A stretch of 64,000 bases of DNA from Paragordius varius (lineage: Eukaryota > Animalia > Nematomorpha). Each line of letters begins with the position of its first letter. Within the stretch, counting starts at the first letter, position 1. Location: contig OZ176054.1 in assembly GCA_964247055.1 (NCBI GenBank), positions 6,014,001-6,078,000 of the forward strand. The letters run 5' to 3'. The notes under the pieces are model-generated. The model worked only from the letters and a program-made list of their open reading frames with translations. It did no database searches and was not told where the DNA came from. The translations under genes were made by a program, and so were the position numbers. Below are positions 43,850-61,324 of this stretch, one piece after another.

Positions 43850-46800
43850 ATGGAGAAATTAAGTCTGGAAGCCTATGATCCCGCAACTAGCTTTGATGAT
43901 TATATCGATTATATAAAGAGAATGTTAAAAGTGAAATTAATTCCAGAAGATGACGAAACAAAAAAAACTTATTATTGGCCTACATTGGTCTATCGCATAT
44001 TCCAAAGTTGAGGAAATTCTTTTATCCCGTACTGTTAGAGGAAGTGGGCTGGGATGCTTTGGTAGCAGCTGAGAAAAAATATTTGCTCCGACATACAATG
44101 TGTTTGCCGCCAGGTTCCAGTTTACGCAACTCCGAAGGGAAGCCACGGAATCAGTGATGGATTTTTTGATTCGAGTAAAGGAATGTGCTGCCCGGTGCAA
44201 CTTTGGGCAAGATGCAATGCTAAGAATCAGAGATGGGTTTGCGGGAGGGTTACAACTCAAAAGATTGGTGTTCACAAAATTTCCAGATGCAATGGTTGAT
44301 GGGAAACCGGTTACGTTGGAGATGGTGGTAGAAATGGCAATGGCGTACGAAAAGGCGGACAGTTGTTTGGTTGATCAGGGTCCCGACAATAAGCAGGTTA
44401 TGATGATAAGAAAAAAATGTGGAAAATGTGGATACGTGTATGCGATCAACTGGTGTCCCGCTTCAAACAAGGAGTGTTACCGATGCAAAGGACGTGGTCA
44501 TTTTGGCAGGTGTTGCCGGCGCGTTAATATACTGAATGGTAACAATAATAATAATGAAGCCCGAACGCAAGCAAGTCTGAATGGCCATTGGGTGAGGATG
44601 TTGCACGATACCGGAGCTCAAATATCATTGATTGGGAAGAGCACGTGGATGGAGATTGGAAGGCCGACTTTAGCACCCGCGGGTCCAATAGTTGGGTTCA
44701 ACCATCAAGGTACAGCGGTGATGGGACAATGTGTGGTAGATGTGAAATGGAATGGTATGGTCAAACAGTTGGAATGTATGGTTACTAGGAATGATTGGGG
44801 TAACATTTTTGGGTTACCATGGATGAAAAGCTTTGAATGCAGATTTCCAGAGGCTGTATGTGTAAAAAATGTTAATTACGTGGATTTGAATAAATTTAAG
44901 GATTTGTTTTGTGAGGGTATGGGGTGGTACACGGACTAACCATCAAGTTGTTTCTCAAAAAGGGAGTATCCCCAAAAGATTTGCAGCCAGGAGGGTACCT
45001 ATTCCGCTTCAGTCTAAGGTGGAGAGTGAATTAAAGAGGCTTGAAAGTCTGGGTATTATAGAGTCGATAAACCCCTCGCAAACACGAATTGACTGGGTAA
45101 CTCCGTTGGTGATAGTTAAAAAGAATGATAATGATATTCGCATATGTGGTGATTTTAGACTTACTTTAAACCCAAGTCTGGTTCCTGTACATCATCTGAT
45201 TCCTGATCAGTTAGTGTTTAAAATCGGGCAAGGAAAAGTTTTTACGACTTTAGATCTAAAAGAAGCTTACTGGCAAATGCCGATACACCAAGATTATCAA
45301 CATTTACTCACGTTTTGTTCACATATAGGCCTTTTTCGATTTAAGAGACTGCCATTTGGAATATCTAGTGCACCCACGATATTTCAACAAATTATGGATG
45401 AGTTATTAAAGGATTGTCCAGGTTCAGCGGTTTACTTAGGTGATGTAATTGTTAGTGGAACAACGGTAATGGAGCATAAGGATAATTTAGAAAAAGTGTT
45501 GAACAAATTAGCTGCTGTGGGTTTGAAATTAAAAAAGGATAAAATCCAATTAGCTCGTTCCTCAGTGTCATATTTAGGATTTATAATTTCAGACAAAGGT
45601 ATTAAACCTGACAACGAAAAAGTAAAAGCAATTTTGAATTGTCCTACACCTACCAATAAAACATCACTTCGGTCTTTTTTGGGAATGTTAAATTTTCACG
45701 CTCGTTTTATTCCATCTTTGCATGCTACAATTGTGGACTTACATGCGCTTACAGGTTCTAAGAAATGGTGTTGGTCGACAAAAGAAGAGAGGGTTTTTGA
45801 TAATGCTAAACTGTTGGTGAGTAATGCATTATGTCTAATACCGTTTAACCCGAACCTTCCGTTAGTGTTGGAAACAGATGCATCGAATGACGGATTCGTA
45901 GCAGTCTTATCACATATGACAAGTGAGGGAAAACGGCCGATAGCTTTTGCGTCTTGAAAATGTGCGAAGGCAGAACAACATTTCTCGGTAATTGAAAAAG
46001 AAGCAAGGGCAATTTTATATGCGCTAGAAAAATTTAAAATGTTTGTGTATGGCAGAAAGTTCGTATTATTAACCGATCATAAACCCCTGATCAAGTTGTT
46101 TGGCTTTAAGAGAGATCTAAGTAATATTAACAATAGTAGATTAGTAAGATGGATACTCAGAACAGCCGATTATAATTTTACTATACAATATATTAATGGT
46201 TCGGAAAATTTAGTGTATTGGTTATCTCGTCTACCGTATGAAGAACCGACTGAGGAAGTTGAGGAGCAACCCAGGCAAATCAACTTTCTAACAACTGACA
46301 ACTTAAGCGTACAGCGAATGAAAGAAAATACTTTACGGGATGAGTTTTTGATGGTAAAATCGGCTCTACATCATAATGATTGGTCAGCTCCAATTTTAAA
46401 TTCGATATTGAGTATAAGAAACGAAATACAAGAATCATATGGGTTGTTGTATTGGGGTGATCGTCTGTTTATTCCCAGGGCGTTGCGAAATGAAACGTTA
46501 AAATTTTTGCATGTTGGACATTCGGGGGCTAATATAATGAAAGAGTCTGCCAAGGCTAGGGTTTATTGGCCAGGTAAAACCAAGATATTGAAAGTTATGT
46601 GAGATCTTGTATGGGGTGTCAGTTAAACAGGAGTAACATAAAAAGTAATCCAACGTACAAATGGAATTTTAATACGAGTATCTGGGAAAGAATACATCTT
46701 GATATTGCCGGTCCTATAGATGGGTTGTATTGGTTAGTAGCTATCGATAGTAACTCCAGATGGGTTTAAGTCGAATTGCTAAGAACTGTTAATTCTGCAA

Positions 46801-55600: not shown

Positions 55601-56018
55601 GCCTATGATCAAGTATAGATTTTTGGCCTGCTTTGTTTGTGATTTAAAATGTTTTGGCTTGCGGAGATTAAATTGTGATACATTATTTTTAATAAGCACG
55701 AATGTTAAAACTAGATTGCATTTTAATGACGCTATTATTTCATTCATGATTATGCACTGTATATACAAAATATGAACCCTCCCCCCCTCAAATTCTCTTA
55801 TTCAAAACCCTTTTTACAATACCATTATTTTAAACAAAATAGAGACCATAATTTAATACAAGTTATAAAATTAAACAATTACTAAAATTTATTATTGCAA
55901 GTTTTAGGCAAAATATAACTACTAACTATACAATCTACACAAGTGCGTCTGTTACAATGAGATTTCGAATTATATGCTAAGTTTAATTATTAAAGCTAAT
56001 TATAATAAGTTTAAAAAT

Positions 56019-59000
56019 CTAATAATTTTTCTGAGGGCGCCCACGATTGTCTTGTCCTTTTTTGGGACCTCTTCTGTGATCGATATTGTCCTTATATTTT
56101 TTATTACGGCTTATGGCTAGTCCTGAGGCACGTTTGCTAGAGTAATTGGTTGAGGTTCTTGACTTCATACTTTTACCGGATGAGCCTCTCCCGTATCCGG
56201 ATTTTTCAGTTTGATATTGACTTCTTTTTCCGGAACGCGGGCGTCCCATTTTATTGCTTACTTTTCTGCCATCCACATTTTCACCCTGAGTCTAAAAATG
56301 TTGAAAATAAATTTTTAGGTATTTTATATTCTGATTTTATAAATATAAATAAATTAGGAATACAGAATACTTTTACACTAAAGGAAAACATTAAACTTAC
56401 CTTATAACGTTTTAACCCATATCGTCCGCTCTTAGTACTCTTCTTTTGCTTTGAAGGATTCTGATATTGATAGTTCCCGTCATTTCCCAAATCTTCCATC
56501 AATTCTTCGTATTCACTTGAGCTAACTTCAGTGCTACTGCTGGACATGGCTTCACTGGAAGAGCTTGCGCTTGACGATGAAGGGCTCGTTGTTGAAGGAG
56601 GAGTGTAATCATTGTCGCTTGCACTGGTGCTGCTGTAATTAGTTTCCATCAATGAGGTTATGCTTTCGGAATCGGATTCTGATTGGTTATTTTGGCTTTG
56701 GTTCTGATTGTACTTGTTACTTCGACCACCAACTTTTCTTCCCGAACGACCGTTGTACGATTTATCTTGGCCACTTGCCAATTTATAACGACGACGACGG
56801 CGCATGTTGGATTGCTGTCCCTTCTTTTTAGATGACATCATATTACCACCACGCATTTGACTTAAACTATAATTACCACTATCAGATGCATTATAGTTAT
56901 TGTTTTGGGATCGTTTAGACGAGGAAGTGGTTCTCATACGTTTTCGTTTGTTTCCAGATTGATAATTTGGAGGCAGTTTACCTTCACGCTCCGCCTCGCT
57001 ATCACTAATAAATTGACCAGTCTCATCATCACGTTCAGGCATACGCTTGTATTTGCGCCCATCCATATCCGTGCCCGCTACGTATCGTTTGTTAGAACTG
57101 GAATTTTTTTTCTTTGAATATTGACTACTATTATTATAATTATTATCATCATAATTCTGCCTTTGCATATTCATACCAGAGCTATCATTATTATTGCTCC
57201 TGTAGCGTTTATATTTTTTGGGATGGCTTTGGGTGTAGCCTTGTGGCAATTTTCCTTCTCGTTCGGCTTCGCTATCACTGATAAATTGGCCGGTTTCATT
57301 ACGTTCTGGCATTCGCCTGGGATGTTTACGCCCATCCATTTCAGTACCTTCAACAGTACCTACCTTGAACCCGTATTTGGTTCTGTGGCTGGAGCCCGTT
57401 TGATAAGATCCTTGATTGTCATATTCTTGTTCACTTTCACTGCTGCTGTACTGATTTTCTTGTTGACCCATTCTTTTTGGATGTTTGCGTCCGTCCATTT
57501 CAGTTCCTTCAACTGTACCCTTTTTGTAACCATATTTGGTTCTGTTACTACTAGTGCCACTATTGTAACTTTGATTTTGATAATTATTACTGTTATCATG
57601 TTGTTGGGACATTTGTTTATTCGGATGCTTACGGCCATCCATTTCGGTTCCTTCAACTGTACCTTTTTTGAATCCATATTTGGTTCTGTTGCTGGAGCCA
57701 GTTTGATAGGAACCTTGGTTGTTGGAGTCTTGTTCGGCTTCGCTGCTTTCATATTGATCATCTTGTTGTTGAGACATTCTTTTAGATGGATGTTTGCGAC
57801 CATACATTTCAGTTCCTTCTACCGTGCCCTTTTTGTATCCATACTTGGTCCTGTTGCTACTACTAGTATAATTGCTACTTTGATTTTGCGAATTCGACGA
57901 TAATTTTCTTTCGCGTTCAGCCTCACTATCACTAATGAATTGACCAGTTTCGTTTCTTTCTGGCATTCTTCTAGGATGCTTGCGGCCATCCATTTCAGTT
58001 CCCTCAACAGTACCCTTTTTATAGCCATACTTTGTCCTGTTGCTACTTTTATAGTTTTCGTTAGAGTCATTTTCATGCTCAACATCATGTTGTTGAGACA
58101 TTTGTTTATTCGGATGCTTGCGCCCATCCATTTCGGTTCCTTCTACTGTTCCTTTTTTATATCCATATTTTGTTGTATTACTACTGCCACCATAATTATT
58201 ATGGCTATTTTGTTGATTCCCGGATGATAATTTTCCTTCGCGTTCGGCTTCACTATCACTAATAAATTGACCAGTTTCGTTTCTTTCTGGCATTCTTCGA
58301 GGATGTTTGCGGCCATCCATTTCAGTTCCCTCAACTGTTCCCTTTTGATAACCATACTTAGTCCTATTGCTACTTGAATAATTGTGGGCTTCGTTGGATT
58401 CATCTCCCTCGTCGTTCTCATGTTGAGACACTTGTCTGTTCGGATGCTTGCGTCCATCCATTTCTGTTCCTTCGACGGTACCTTTCTTATATCCATATTT
58501 CGTTGTATTGCTACTCTTTTGACTACCTCCATATTGGTTGTTATAATTTGATTTTGAATTCCTGTCAGGATGTTTGCGTCCATCCATTTCAGTACCCTCC
58601 ACAGTGCCTTTTTTGAAACCATATTTGGTCCGATTGCTGTTAGAACCTTGGGTTTGATCCATGCGTTCTTCATCTGAATCACTCTCATCATAGTAATGCT
58701 TATTGAGTGGTCCTCCCATGTTACCCTTCATGCCGCCGTTTAAACGATAATTGTACCCATACATCTTGGTTAATTTATGAGAGGAATCATCGTTATAATT
58801 TTCATTCATTTGATCGTTATTACTGACACCATCACTATAATTATAATTTCCTTTTTCAGAATATTTATTGACCTTATGTTGGGTAAAACCTTGAGGCAAC
58901 TTTCCCTCCCGTTCAGCCTCGCTGTCACTTATAAATTGTCCCGTTTCATTACGTTCAGGCATTCGTTTGTGTTTACGACCATCCATTTCAGTTCCTTCTA

Positions 59001-61324
59001 CCAATCCATTTGTTCCATTTTTCTGATGAGTGGCAGAATATTGGTCATTTTCATTGTTGTCCATTTCTTTGTTGTTACGTTTTGAGTTGCTTTTATTATA
59101 AGAACCGTAATTATAGTTACCAGATTGTTGAGAGTGGCTGTTGCTCTTCTGTTGGTTTTTTTGCAAACCATGAGAAGGGAGTTTACCTTCACGCTCTGCC
59201 TCACTGTCACTAATGAATTGGCCGGTTTCATCATCGCGTTCAGGCATGCGTTTATTTTTTCTACCATCCATTGCTGTCCCAGCAACACCTCCTTTATTGG
59301 AAGAATATTGTTGATTTTGGGAATAGTTGTTAGATCTATTGCGACTTTGCTGTTGATTAGTGTTGTTGTTGGATGATTGTGATGAATTCGATGATTTCGA
59401 ACCAGTCATTTTGTTGTAATTGTCTTCACTTGAATCCGAAGTTTTTCGCACAAACTGCCCCAAACTATTTCTTTCCGGCATTTTTTTATTGTTCTTAGAT
59501 TGGGATTTTTGTGTTTCGCCTTCCCCACCATAACTATTAGATGACATGCGTCTATCGTGATCTTCAAAACCCTCTACAATAATAATTGTAATAAAATAAG
59601 TCATAAAAACTTAAAACAAAAACTTTTAATGGCTAATTTCAGCATGCAAAGCGAAGAAAGGAATTCTATTTTTTTCCCATATAGTATAAAATAAAAAAAA
59701 CCCGATAATTAATGAAACACATTCCACAATTCACTTTATTATACAAAATAATAGATCCAATTCTCATGAAATATGTTATTTAATCACCCAAAATAGATAT
59801 TTTTTAATCGTATTAAATCAATTGTACAATAACCGATAGAGGTGAACATATTAATTAAAGCGCCCCATAGCTGAAAAAATGAATATCCCCGTTATATTAA
59901 GTATTGAGAATTTTGTACCGAAAATTGGGGAATAAATATTTTAAATAGTTGGATAATTGCCATTAATTACTGAGAGCTAAAGGTAATATACCATATTTAA
60001 CTATGAAAAAAATTAGGGCATAATATATCATTGGATAAACTTTGGATGGTGATACATTCAAATGTATTTTAAACTTCCTCCTTTGTGTAAGTGCCTTAAA
60101 TATTTAAAATATTAAAATTTGGCAGCAACAAAACATAGATTTAATTATTTACACTATATATATAATTAACCCTTTTAATTCGCCATCTAATAGACGCGAA
60201 TGAAATATTTTCAAATTTGCCTTTATACATGTCGTCACATAATTAAGATTCTAATAATTTAAAATCGACCGATTTTTTATAGAGGGTATACTGCGATGTG
60301 GCACCCTGATTTTGACTTCTATGACCAGCTAACTATTTAATGGTACTACCAACTTGGAGAATAAAAAATCTCTCAAATATAATAAATAGAATAAACCATC
60401 CTTATCGTTGGTATCATTCGACATTTTATTCCCAGACTTATTCCCATTTAACTGATAGCGTGAGCTTGTCTCCGTTGCTGGCATTTCGTTTGATGGGTTC
60501 GCCACTTGAATTTTAATGTTTATCGATTTCGATGCAACTGACTCGCTTACAATAGTTTTTAGTTCAGAGCTGTAAAACGCCAAATATATATAGTAAAAAT
60601 TAAAATTAAACGAACAAATTGTAAAAATATTAACACAAATAGTTTGTACAATCATAGTTTTTATAAAATTGCAAAATATGAAATTTAGATTATATTAATA
60701 AAATAATCAATTATAATACGTTATTTATAATCGTAAATATATAATTAATCAAGCAATAATTTAGACAAAAAAATATTTGGAAAGATTACGTTTGGTCCGT
60801 AAAATTTCCAGTAAATTATAATGAAATTAAGTACACTGCTTGTATTGACGAATTTATTAACAAAACAAAAAATTTAAAAAGTACTGTGCCGTAACAAAAT
60901 AATTATGTTAACGTGTTTAAATTAATTAATAAAGTTTAATAAATGAGCCCAATATCAAAAATTATTATATCACGCACCTAACATTATAACAAAAAAATTA
61001 ATTATATATTTAGAATTAATAAATGGACGGTTATAAAATCCACTTCCTAAAAATATAATGTTATAAACGCATTAAAATTGATATTTACGGATTAACTATA
61101 TGCTGTTCAATGTTTGTTGGTATTGAATAATCTGAGCTATTGAAAAGAGGATCAAAATTAAATGGCTAATCAATTAATGATATATCAACCTTTTCAGCAA
61201 TTGGGGTTGTATCGTTATTATCAGAATTATTTACAATCAAATCAAGTTCTTCAAATATCTATGGTAAATTTACTATGAGGTAATGCAATTTTTTTACAAT
61301 ATAAGAATAATGGTATACCGGCAT
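56019..61324 (-). CDS. Uncharacterised ~1,260-aa hydrophilic repeat protein (12 GTxMDGRK motifs, 6 MPER..ETGQFISDSEAERExKL motifs, basic GRP-containing tail)
   Basis: Phase-consistent exons 61258-61190, 61165-61089, 60569-60397, 59573-56401 (3173 nt open) and 56291-56019 (TAG). The first exon from ATG 61324 is provisional. Confidence 0.8.

Follow-up and report, generated by a model that had tools for sequence, protein, structure and literature searches.

Group 1 late embryogenesis abundant (LEA) and KGG hydrophilins, such as plant Em, Bacillus GsiB, E. coli YciG, and Neurospora Con-10, are hydrophilic, Gly-rich, disordered proteins that carry several copies of a motif of ~20 residues. Nopp140 and treacle are long, disordered proteins of ~10 or more units, with basic and acidic Ser-rich blocks, CK2-type sites, and clusters resembling nuclear localization signals (NLS). 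Tardigrade Dsup and the HMGA-type AT-hook proteins are disordered and lineage-restricted and carry, at the C-terminus, a short, basic element with a potential affinity for chromatin or the minor groove of DNA, and multi-copy neuropeptide precursors of the FMRFamide-like kind contain many conserved copies of a private motif that end in Gly plus basic residues, are separated by variable acidic spacers, and are conserved at the amino acid level. We analyzed a 64,000-nucleotide stretch of the Paragordius varius genome (contig OZ176054.1, positions 6,014,001 to 6,078,000; hereafter the window), in which one gene on the minus strand encodes a protein that resembles all of these systems in the features just listed. 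It carries 13 copies of a motif A and seven of a motif B, counting decayed copies, in polar spacers. As far as its sequence tells, the locus is a real protein-coding gene, present in one copy and restricted to its lineage, in which two coding exons are recognized, and its product represents a new protein family, though one of a general kind already known, the tandem-motif disordered proteins.

There are significant differences between the motif protein and each of these systems. Compared with the LEA and KGG hydrophilins, it has two motifs in a fixed order, long N/Q/S/Y spacers, a length ~10–20 times greater, and a single-copy gene, although the KGG repeat (G-N-F-x-x-D) and motif B (G-Q-F-x-x-D) show a local likeness. 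In Nopp140 and treacle, the repeat is one of composition; in contrast, the repeat of the motif protein consists of two near-invariant long motifs, with S-D-S-E in motif B as the CK2-type site. The LisH and SRP40 domains of Nopp140 and treacle were absent in a Pfam scan of the main exon and the last exon, and membership in this group was ruled out on that ground. Unlike Dsup and the HMGA-type proteins, the motif protein has only two minimal GRP cores without profile support, and it shows neither an HMGN-like motif nor any sequence similarity. It departs from the FMRFamide-like precursors in its size, in its large non-repeat regions, in a conserved block that runs past the putative cleavage sites, and in a second motif without a C-terminal site.

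The gene is marked by a minus-strand open reading frame (ORF) of 1107 amino acids at 56281..59604, by far the longest in the window; the runner-up stop-free frame on the same strand has 194 amino acids, and, given the local base composition, a stop-free run of 1107 codons would arise by chance with a probability of ~1e-35. All coordinates of the gene given below refer to the minus strand. The main coding exon (56401..59547), which was re-translated, spans 1049 codons, beginning at the first ATG (59547-59545) and ending at the donor AAG/GTAAGT at 56401/56400. A predicted 109-nt GT-AG intron (GTAAGT...TTTTAG, 56292..56400) follows; it is canonical, keeps the frame, and joins GRYGLKRYK to TQGENVDGRK, so that the 13th A motif is split by it, as was proposed in the original prediction for a degenerate motif across the last splice junction. 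The last exon (56019..56291) contributes 90 codons and the stop TAG (56021-56019) and encodes a very basic tail with an isoelectric point (pI) of 11.1. A possible poly(A) signal, AATAAA (55888..55893), is located ~125 nt past the stop and is weak evidence in such AT-rich DNA. From the ATG at 59547, the predicted product would have about 1,139 residues (1049 + 90). In the database searches and the folding, the exons were taken separately, and the 90-residue last exon was searched against Pfam only.

The core of motif A, G-T-x-M-[D/Y]-G-R-K, occurs 12 times in the translation by regular-expression count, and nine of these cores lie in a longer 21-mer, TKYG[YF]xxGTVEGTEM[D/Y]GRKHP. Motif B, MPER(x1-2)ETGQFISDSEAERExKL, has 22–23 residues and occurs in six full copies by the same kind of count; a seventh copy is decayed. 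Each full B begins 3–4 residues past an A. The original prediction had given these same numbers, 12 cores, nine 21-mers, and six B motifs directly after an A, and they hold, except that one of its 12 GTxMDGRK cores is GTEMYGRK in the reference and carries D in four other DNA runs. From the N-terminus, the array begins with the decayed B (MPERNSLGQFV, 59449..59481), which has no A ahead of it. Two variant units follow, namely A core 1 (GTAMDGRK, 59257..59280) with B1 (59179..59247, 23 residues, a DD variant) and A core 2 (GTEMDGRK, 58972..58995) with B2 (58897..58962, 22 residues). The nine 21-mers are unit 3 (58567..58629), unit 4 (58441..58503), unit 5 (58300..58362) with B3 (58228..58293, 22 residues), unit 6 (58111..58173), unit 7 (57973..58035) with B4 (57901..57966, 22 residues), unit 8 (57787..57849), unit 9 (57622..57684), unit 10 (57478..57540), and unit 11 (57319..57381) with B5 (57247..57312, 22 residues). 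The variant A core 12 (GTDMDGRK, 57052..57075) is followed by B6 (56974..57042, 23 residues, again a DD variant), and the decayed 13th A unit, with the intron inside, closes the array at 56262..56427.

Of the 13 A copies, 12 have D-G-R-K; in the other one, unit 8, the reference has Y-G-R-K. DGRK occurs 11 times, against at most two times in 2000 residue shuffles. The reference departs from the consensus at two places, Y in unit 8 (MYGRK, single-nucleotide polymorphism (SNP) at 57804) and R in B4 (ERERKL, SNP at 57909), and at both places other individuals have the consensus residue: D, as MDGRK, in four other DNA runs, and G, as EREGKL, in three. The linkers after the A-only units (e.g., ...KRMSQQQDDQYESSEAEQD...) resemble decayed B motifs, which suggests that the ancestral unit was probably A+B; the gene is an old array in which at least 13 units stand in tandem.

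Conserved short motifs in disordered proteins are usually hard to distinguish from a recent repeat expansion. A comparison of the nine A 21-mers with one another shows 97% identity at the first two codon positions and only 52% at the third. By the Nei-Gojobori method, the proportions of synonymous and nonsynonymous differences (pS and pN) are 0.74 and 0.028 between the A copies and 0.85 and 0.024 between the B copies. At identical residues, identical codons are used at a frequency of 0.50 in A and 0.49 in B, versus 0.46 expected for random draws from the codon usage of the gene. A residual relatedness persists in a few unit pairs (residues 396/505, 459/622, and 567/670). The Gly of the DGRK cores is encoded by GGT, GGA, GGC, and GGG, three times each, and the use of all four codons was read correctly in the original prediction. 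Codon identity is near random and the residues are near fixed; therefore, the copies are old, and each has been maintained by selection on the protein. Tandem Repeats Finder (TRF) detected no tandem repeat at the DNA level, and a DNA satellite or recent expansion was ruled out by this empty result together with synonymous sites at the random level. Since the synonymous sites are randomized, the amino acids are nearly fixed, and the coding indels are of 3 nt, the locus is a real gene under long-term protein-level selection and not a satellite. The original prediction had argued the same from the Gly codons, and the TRF null and a pS of 0.74–0.85 versus a pN of about 0.03 bear it out. The motifs are under strong purifying selection, whereas the spacers drift, and we infer that the motifs are the working parts of the protein. 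With the silent sites of the 13 and seven copies randomized and the residues near invariant, this one gene provides an internal, replicated measure of which residues matter, without recourse to other species.

Variation between individuals was followed in contigs from four other DNA runs. These contigs are colinear with the reference over the exon, with even depth and no joints; hence, a misassembly of the repeat region is ruled out. The contigs of the runs holding the locus cross the intron and intergenic DNA, and these runs are therefore DNA; one of them has GATC junctions like those of a Hi-C library. The three coding indels listed are all of 3 nt and lie in or beside spacers, and those listed in the flanks and the intron are of 2, 3, 15, 4, 2, 2, 1, 3, and 2 nt, with three of the nine being multiples of three. 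The coding SNPs listed comprise 14 synonymous and 13 nonsynonymous changes, and the pN/pS among the listed polymorphisms is ~0.17 in the motifs versus ~0.52 in the spacers, rough values from small numbers. In the last exon, seven SNPs in less than 90 nt (56103-56190; five synonymous and two nonsynonymous) are common to three runs and suggest a divergent haplotype. The noncoding DNA upstream of the gene (59733-60165) is highly polymorphic: a segment of 33 nt is replaced at 59733, 15 nt are deleted at 59791, and indels of 1–4 nt occur at several places.

The protein is composed mainly of Ser (15%), Asn (11%), Gly (10%), Lys (9%), Glu (8%), Gln (7%), Arg (7%), and Tyr (6%), with a grand average of hydropathy (GRAVY) of −1.85 and a pI of 9.3. 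In the exon 56401-59547, Gly makes up 9.8% of the residues, and there is no Cys and no Trp, in agreement with the original prediction. The charge alternates along the array, from basic A blocks to acidic B blocks or acidic Q/S/E-rich B remnants, and the spacers between the units are rich in N/Q/S/Y/G. Beyond the array, regular expressions pick out a KRKR cluster resembling a classical NLS (56938..56949), whose function would follow from its sequence only, and there is an RRRRR cluster (56788..56802) with a 3-nt deletion polymorphism at 56798; both are followed by an acidic tail segment rich in Ser, Thr, and Pro (56458..56667). In the last exon, regular expressions also find two AT-hook-like cores, GRP in KMGRPRSGKR (56238..56246) and RGRP in NRGRPQK (56034..56045). 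Pfam returned no family at E ≤ 10 for the last exon with these K/R-flanked GRP cores, and very short models are easily filtered out in such a scan.

AlphaFold2, run without an alignment, gave a mean predicted local distance difference test score (pLDDT) of 31.9 and zero secondary structure for the whole exon. For a 175-residue fragment, the mean pLDDT was 54.8, and block means of 70–77 were reached over the RKHPRR-B stretch only, where a small β bridge is followed by a helix over SDSEAEREGKL. In the model of this fragment, the small hairpin and the helix formed at B only (B3, block-mean pLDDT ~70). The protein is therefore predicted to be disordered throughout, and motif B may form a weak hairpin and a helix. 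With a mean pLDDT of 31.9 and its 13 A and seven B copies, it takes its place among the intrinsically disordered tandem-motif proteins.

Pfam gave no family for the exon at E ≤ 1 or for a single unit at E ≤ 10, and likewise none for the C-terminal part and the last exon; the PDB sequences gave no match. A word-indexed search across 5.8 billion proteins scored 8000 candidates, and not one of them passed; low-complexity words probably dominated this search. An exhaustive phmmer search of 1.84 billion representatives returned a single match, a bacterial repeat protein (P0001), which is discussed below and was not accepted as a relative. Queries of the ESM Atlas with the whole exon and with residues 393-552 yielded no usable match. 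A profile search with an A+B alignment drew 157, 60, and 57 pattern matches in metagenome, prokaryotic genome, and viral contigs, respectively, none of which was confirmed. In the P. varius genome itself (110.6 Mb), degenerate DNA patterns found 11 A and six B places, all in the motif gene, with zero control hits, and a protein search of the same genome for paralogues recovered the motif gene alone. Full-text literature searches on Nematomorpha genomes and on disordered or LEA proteins turned up no mention of such a protein. The failure of the original prediction to recognize a family was thus repeated in Pfam, the PDB, the 1.84 billion representatives, the ESM Atlas, and the three DNA collections, where no relative was accepted. 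The libraries do not contain the window protein itself, and they may also lack orphan genes that were never called in related worms; therefore, absence within Nematomorpha is not established. Two motifs private to one gene would define a new protein family in a barely studied animal phylum.

Three candidates exist for the 5′ end of the gene. An acceptor-like TTGTAG/ ending at 59574 is a candidate upstream start of the main exon, and the first in-frame ATG beyond it is that at 59547. The original prediction had drawn a single 3.2-kb exon at 56401-59573; its donor end at 56401 stands, and its 5′ limit at 59573 is a plausible acceptor only. Translation may begin at ATG 59547 after a spliced leader exon, which gives a hydrophilic start (MSSNSYGG...), or at ATG 59604 read straight through, which would apply only if the 59574 acceptor is unused and gives a short hydrophobic start, MTYFITIIIVEG. 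The third candidate is a speculative upstream coding exon of 88 nt (60397..60484) that would begin at ATG 60484 (MPATETSS..., hydrophilic) and end at a weak donor, G/GTTTAT, the phase 1 of which fits the 59574 acceptor. A search of 59.6–64 kb for an upstream exon or a signal peptide yielded this speculative exon alone and nothing convincing. The surrounding patch 60397-60566 on the minus strand is GC-richer (0.41) and holds an open frame in S/N/K-rich sequence, with an acceptor-like TTTTACAG before it and a weak donor after it; it is possibly an upstream exon of the motif gene or of another gene.

We tentatively read the protein as a multivalent disordered scaffold with A and B as binding modules, and give this reading not quite an even chance of being right. 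It would work by stickers and spacers: A and B would be short binding modules that fold on contact, with B possibly forming a small hairpin and a helix; through its many copies, the protein would be highly multivalent, either toward a single partner or in contacts of basic A with acidic B; and the spacers would supply reach, so that the scaffold could form or organize an assembly or condensate. A nuclear or nucleic-acid-associated site is favored, from sequence only, because of the KRKR and RRRRR clusters, the two GRP cores, and the tail with a pI of 11. The term multivalent motif system, which was used in the original prediction, would fit this anatomy. If the motifs are indeed binding modules, the gene would be a clean natural model of stickers and spacers with two sticker types of opposite charge; at present, it is a well-documented orphan and not the discovery of a mechanism. 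Several observations weigh against the scaffold. The AT-hook and NLS readings are short regular-expression matches, on which Pfam is silent even at E ≤ 10; and AlphaFold2 gave no confident structure for motif A, nor for motif B in its full-length context. General docking motifs would be expected in further proteins, yet A and B are confined to one gene. The start site has three candidates, which leaves room for a signal peptide, and runs of the same species label that were guessed to be RNA contain next to no words of the locus, which is not proof of silence.

The room left at the N-terminus matters for a quite different reading, in which the protein is a secreted precursor of many peptides. 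In each A copy, DGRK would supply an amidation Gly and a dibasic site, and processing would release at least a dozen small peptides, acidic and amidated. A Gly and a dibasic site do follow each copy, G-R-K is the best-conserved element across all 13 A copies, and B is always preceded by RR or KR. The variable acidic stretches would serve as spacer peptides, and the six B-less central units have polar spacers between the conserved blocks, five of the six being acidic; the protein lacks Cys; its motifs are confined to a single gene, a common situation among peptide precursors; and the ATG at 59604 would offer the short hydrophobic start given above, if the 59574 acceptor is unused. However, no candidate N-terminus showed a convincing signal peptide, as judged without a signal-peptide predictor, and conservation crosses the putative cleavage sites, with TKYG[YF] upstream and HP downstream. 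The basic sites on the N-terminal side vary between units (KK, QK, and KV), motif B lacks a dibasic site at its C-terminus, no role would remain for the GRP tail or for ~300 residues of N/Q/S-rich, basic, and Ser-rich sequence, and the protein is far larger than typical precursors. We consider such a precursor improbable. A more specific version, which we regard as a long shot, takes account of the parasite, which is known for altering host behavior: the protein would be a polyprotein of the host-manipulating animal, cleaved at the invariant Gly-Arg-Lys into at least a dozen amidated acidic peptides (...V-E-G-T-E-M-D-amide) and a second series from motif B. If this were true, the cleavage products would be a new bioactive peptide family without a relative in the databases searched.

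A stress-protecting, LEA-like hydrophilin would shield macromolecules or membranes during the freezing, drying, or osmotic stress of a resistant stage, and we regard this as unlikely, though it deserves more weight than the secreted precursor. Hydrophilins are defined operationally by Gly above 6% and high hydrophilicity, a compositional class and not a homology family, and with 9.8% Gly, a GRAVY of −1.85, and full predicted disorder, the motif protein falls within it. Its conserved 21-mer recalls the 20-mer repeat of the group 1 LEA and KGG proteins; on visual inspection, B (TGQFISD...) looks similar to the beginning of the YciG KGG repeat (SGNFAED...), and motif A is faintly like the LEA group 1 20-mer. 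These likenesses did not survive profile comparison. The KGG model PF10685 found nothing at E ≤ 10 in six frames of the whole genome, whereas four control genomes were positive (profile threshold of 20.4 bits, 22 positions); hhalign, used to compare the A+B profile with E. coli YciG, gave a probability of 0.3% over seven aligned columns; and neither LEA_5 (PF00477) nor any other Pfam family matched the exon or the unit. The three nulls from PF10685, hhalign, and PF00477 ruled out membership in the KGG and LEA group 1 families. Moreover, LEA-type proteins usually come in multigene families, whereas the motif gene has no second copy in its genome, and near-invariance over 21–23 residues exceeds the apparent need of bulk shielding. 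Kinship with P0001 would tie the gene distantly, and possibly through horizontal transfer, to a β-rich protein with a 59-residue repeat; this bacterial protein has 1822 residues, with ~22 near-identical 59-residue units and a WXG100-like C-terminus. As the sole match of the phmmer search, it scored 42.3 bits (E of 4.4e-6) over seven stretches, BLASTP gave 50.8 bits with the repeats in register, and the real P0001 array (44.4 bits) exceeded all 400 unit-shuffled controls; a pattern proposed as common to both unit types is Y-x-x-G-T-V-x-G-x-x-x-D-G ... R-x-P-[DE]-R ... F. However, the alignments reach just 21–27% identity and contain many gaps, and the score adds up contributions from the repeats. 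When the same unit shuffle was applied in all copies, one of the 400 shuffled P0001 arrays still reached 36 bits; therefore, in a library of 1.84 billion, the very heavy tail of repeat-against-repeat scores makes nominal E-values overstate significance by orders of magnitude. P0001 also draws nonsense Pfam E-values (1e-35 for a herpesvirus repeat) without any individually significant stretch, the invariant R-K of motif A is unmatched in it, and no intermediate sequence linking the two was found. The spliceosomal intron and the host-like, AT-rich codon usage of the motif gene are likewise unlike what a bacterial origin would entail. After the Pfam check and the unit-shuffle control, P0001 was set aside as a probable repeat-versus-repeat artefact, and a true relationship is extremely improbable. 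Its spurious Pfam scores are a warning that summed repeat scores mislead. It is just as hard to credit that the locus is an untranscribed or decaying open frame without present function. The near-empty runs guessed to be RNA and the failure of the searches to find any homologue would suit such a frame, but it would have to account for 1107 stop-free codons in DNA of 26–39% GC, saturated synonymous divergence with a pN of about 0.03 between the copies, coding indels that are in-frame only, and an excess of synonymous polymorphism inside the motifs. The long frame, the divergence pattern, the in-frame indels, and the polymorphism of the motifs together require continuing selection on the protein.

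Two further observations concern the surroundings of the gene. The hexanucleotide CAGCTG occurs six times in the whole window and not at all in the 3.4 kb of coding sequence of the motif gene. The GC content of the window is 24–31%, except in the motif gene (35–39%) and in an island at 44–48 kb, which is GC-rich because of a remnant of a long terminal repeat (LTR) retroelement. Two ORFs that overlap on the plus strand (44100-45957) code for an aspartyl protease, a reverse transcriptase, and an RNase H, with Pfam E-values as low as 4e-22; they represent the pol remnant of the LTR retroelement, with its frame broken.

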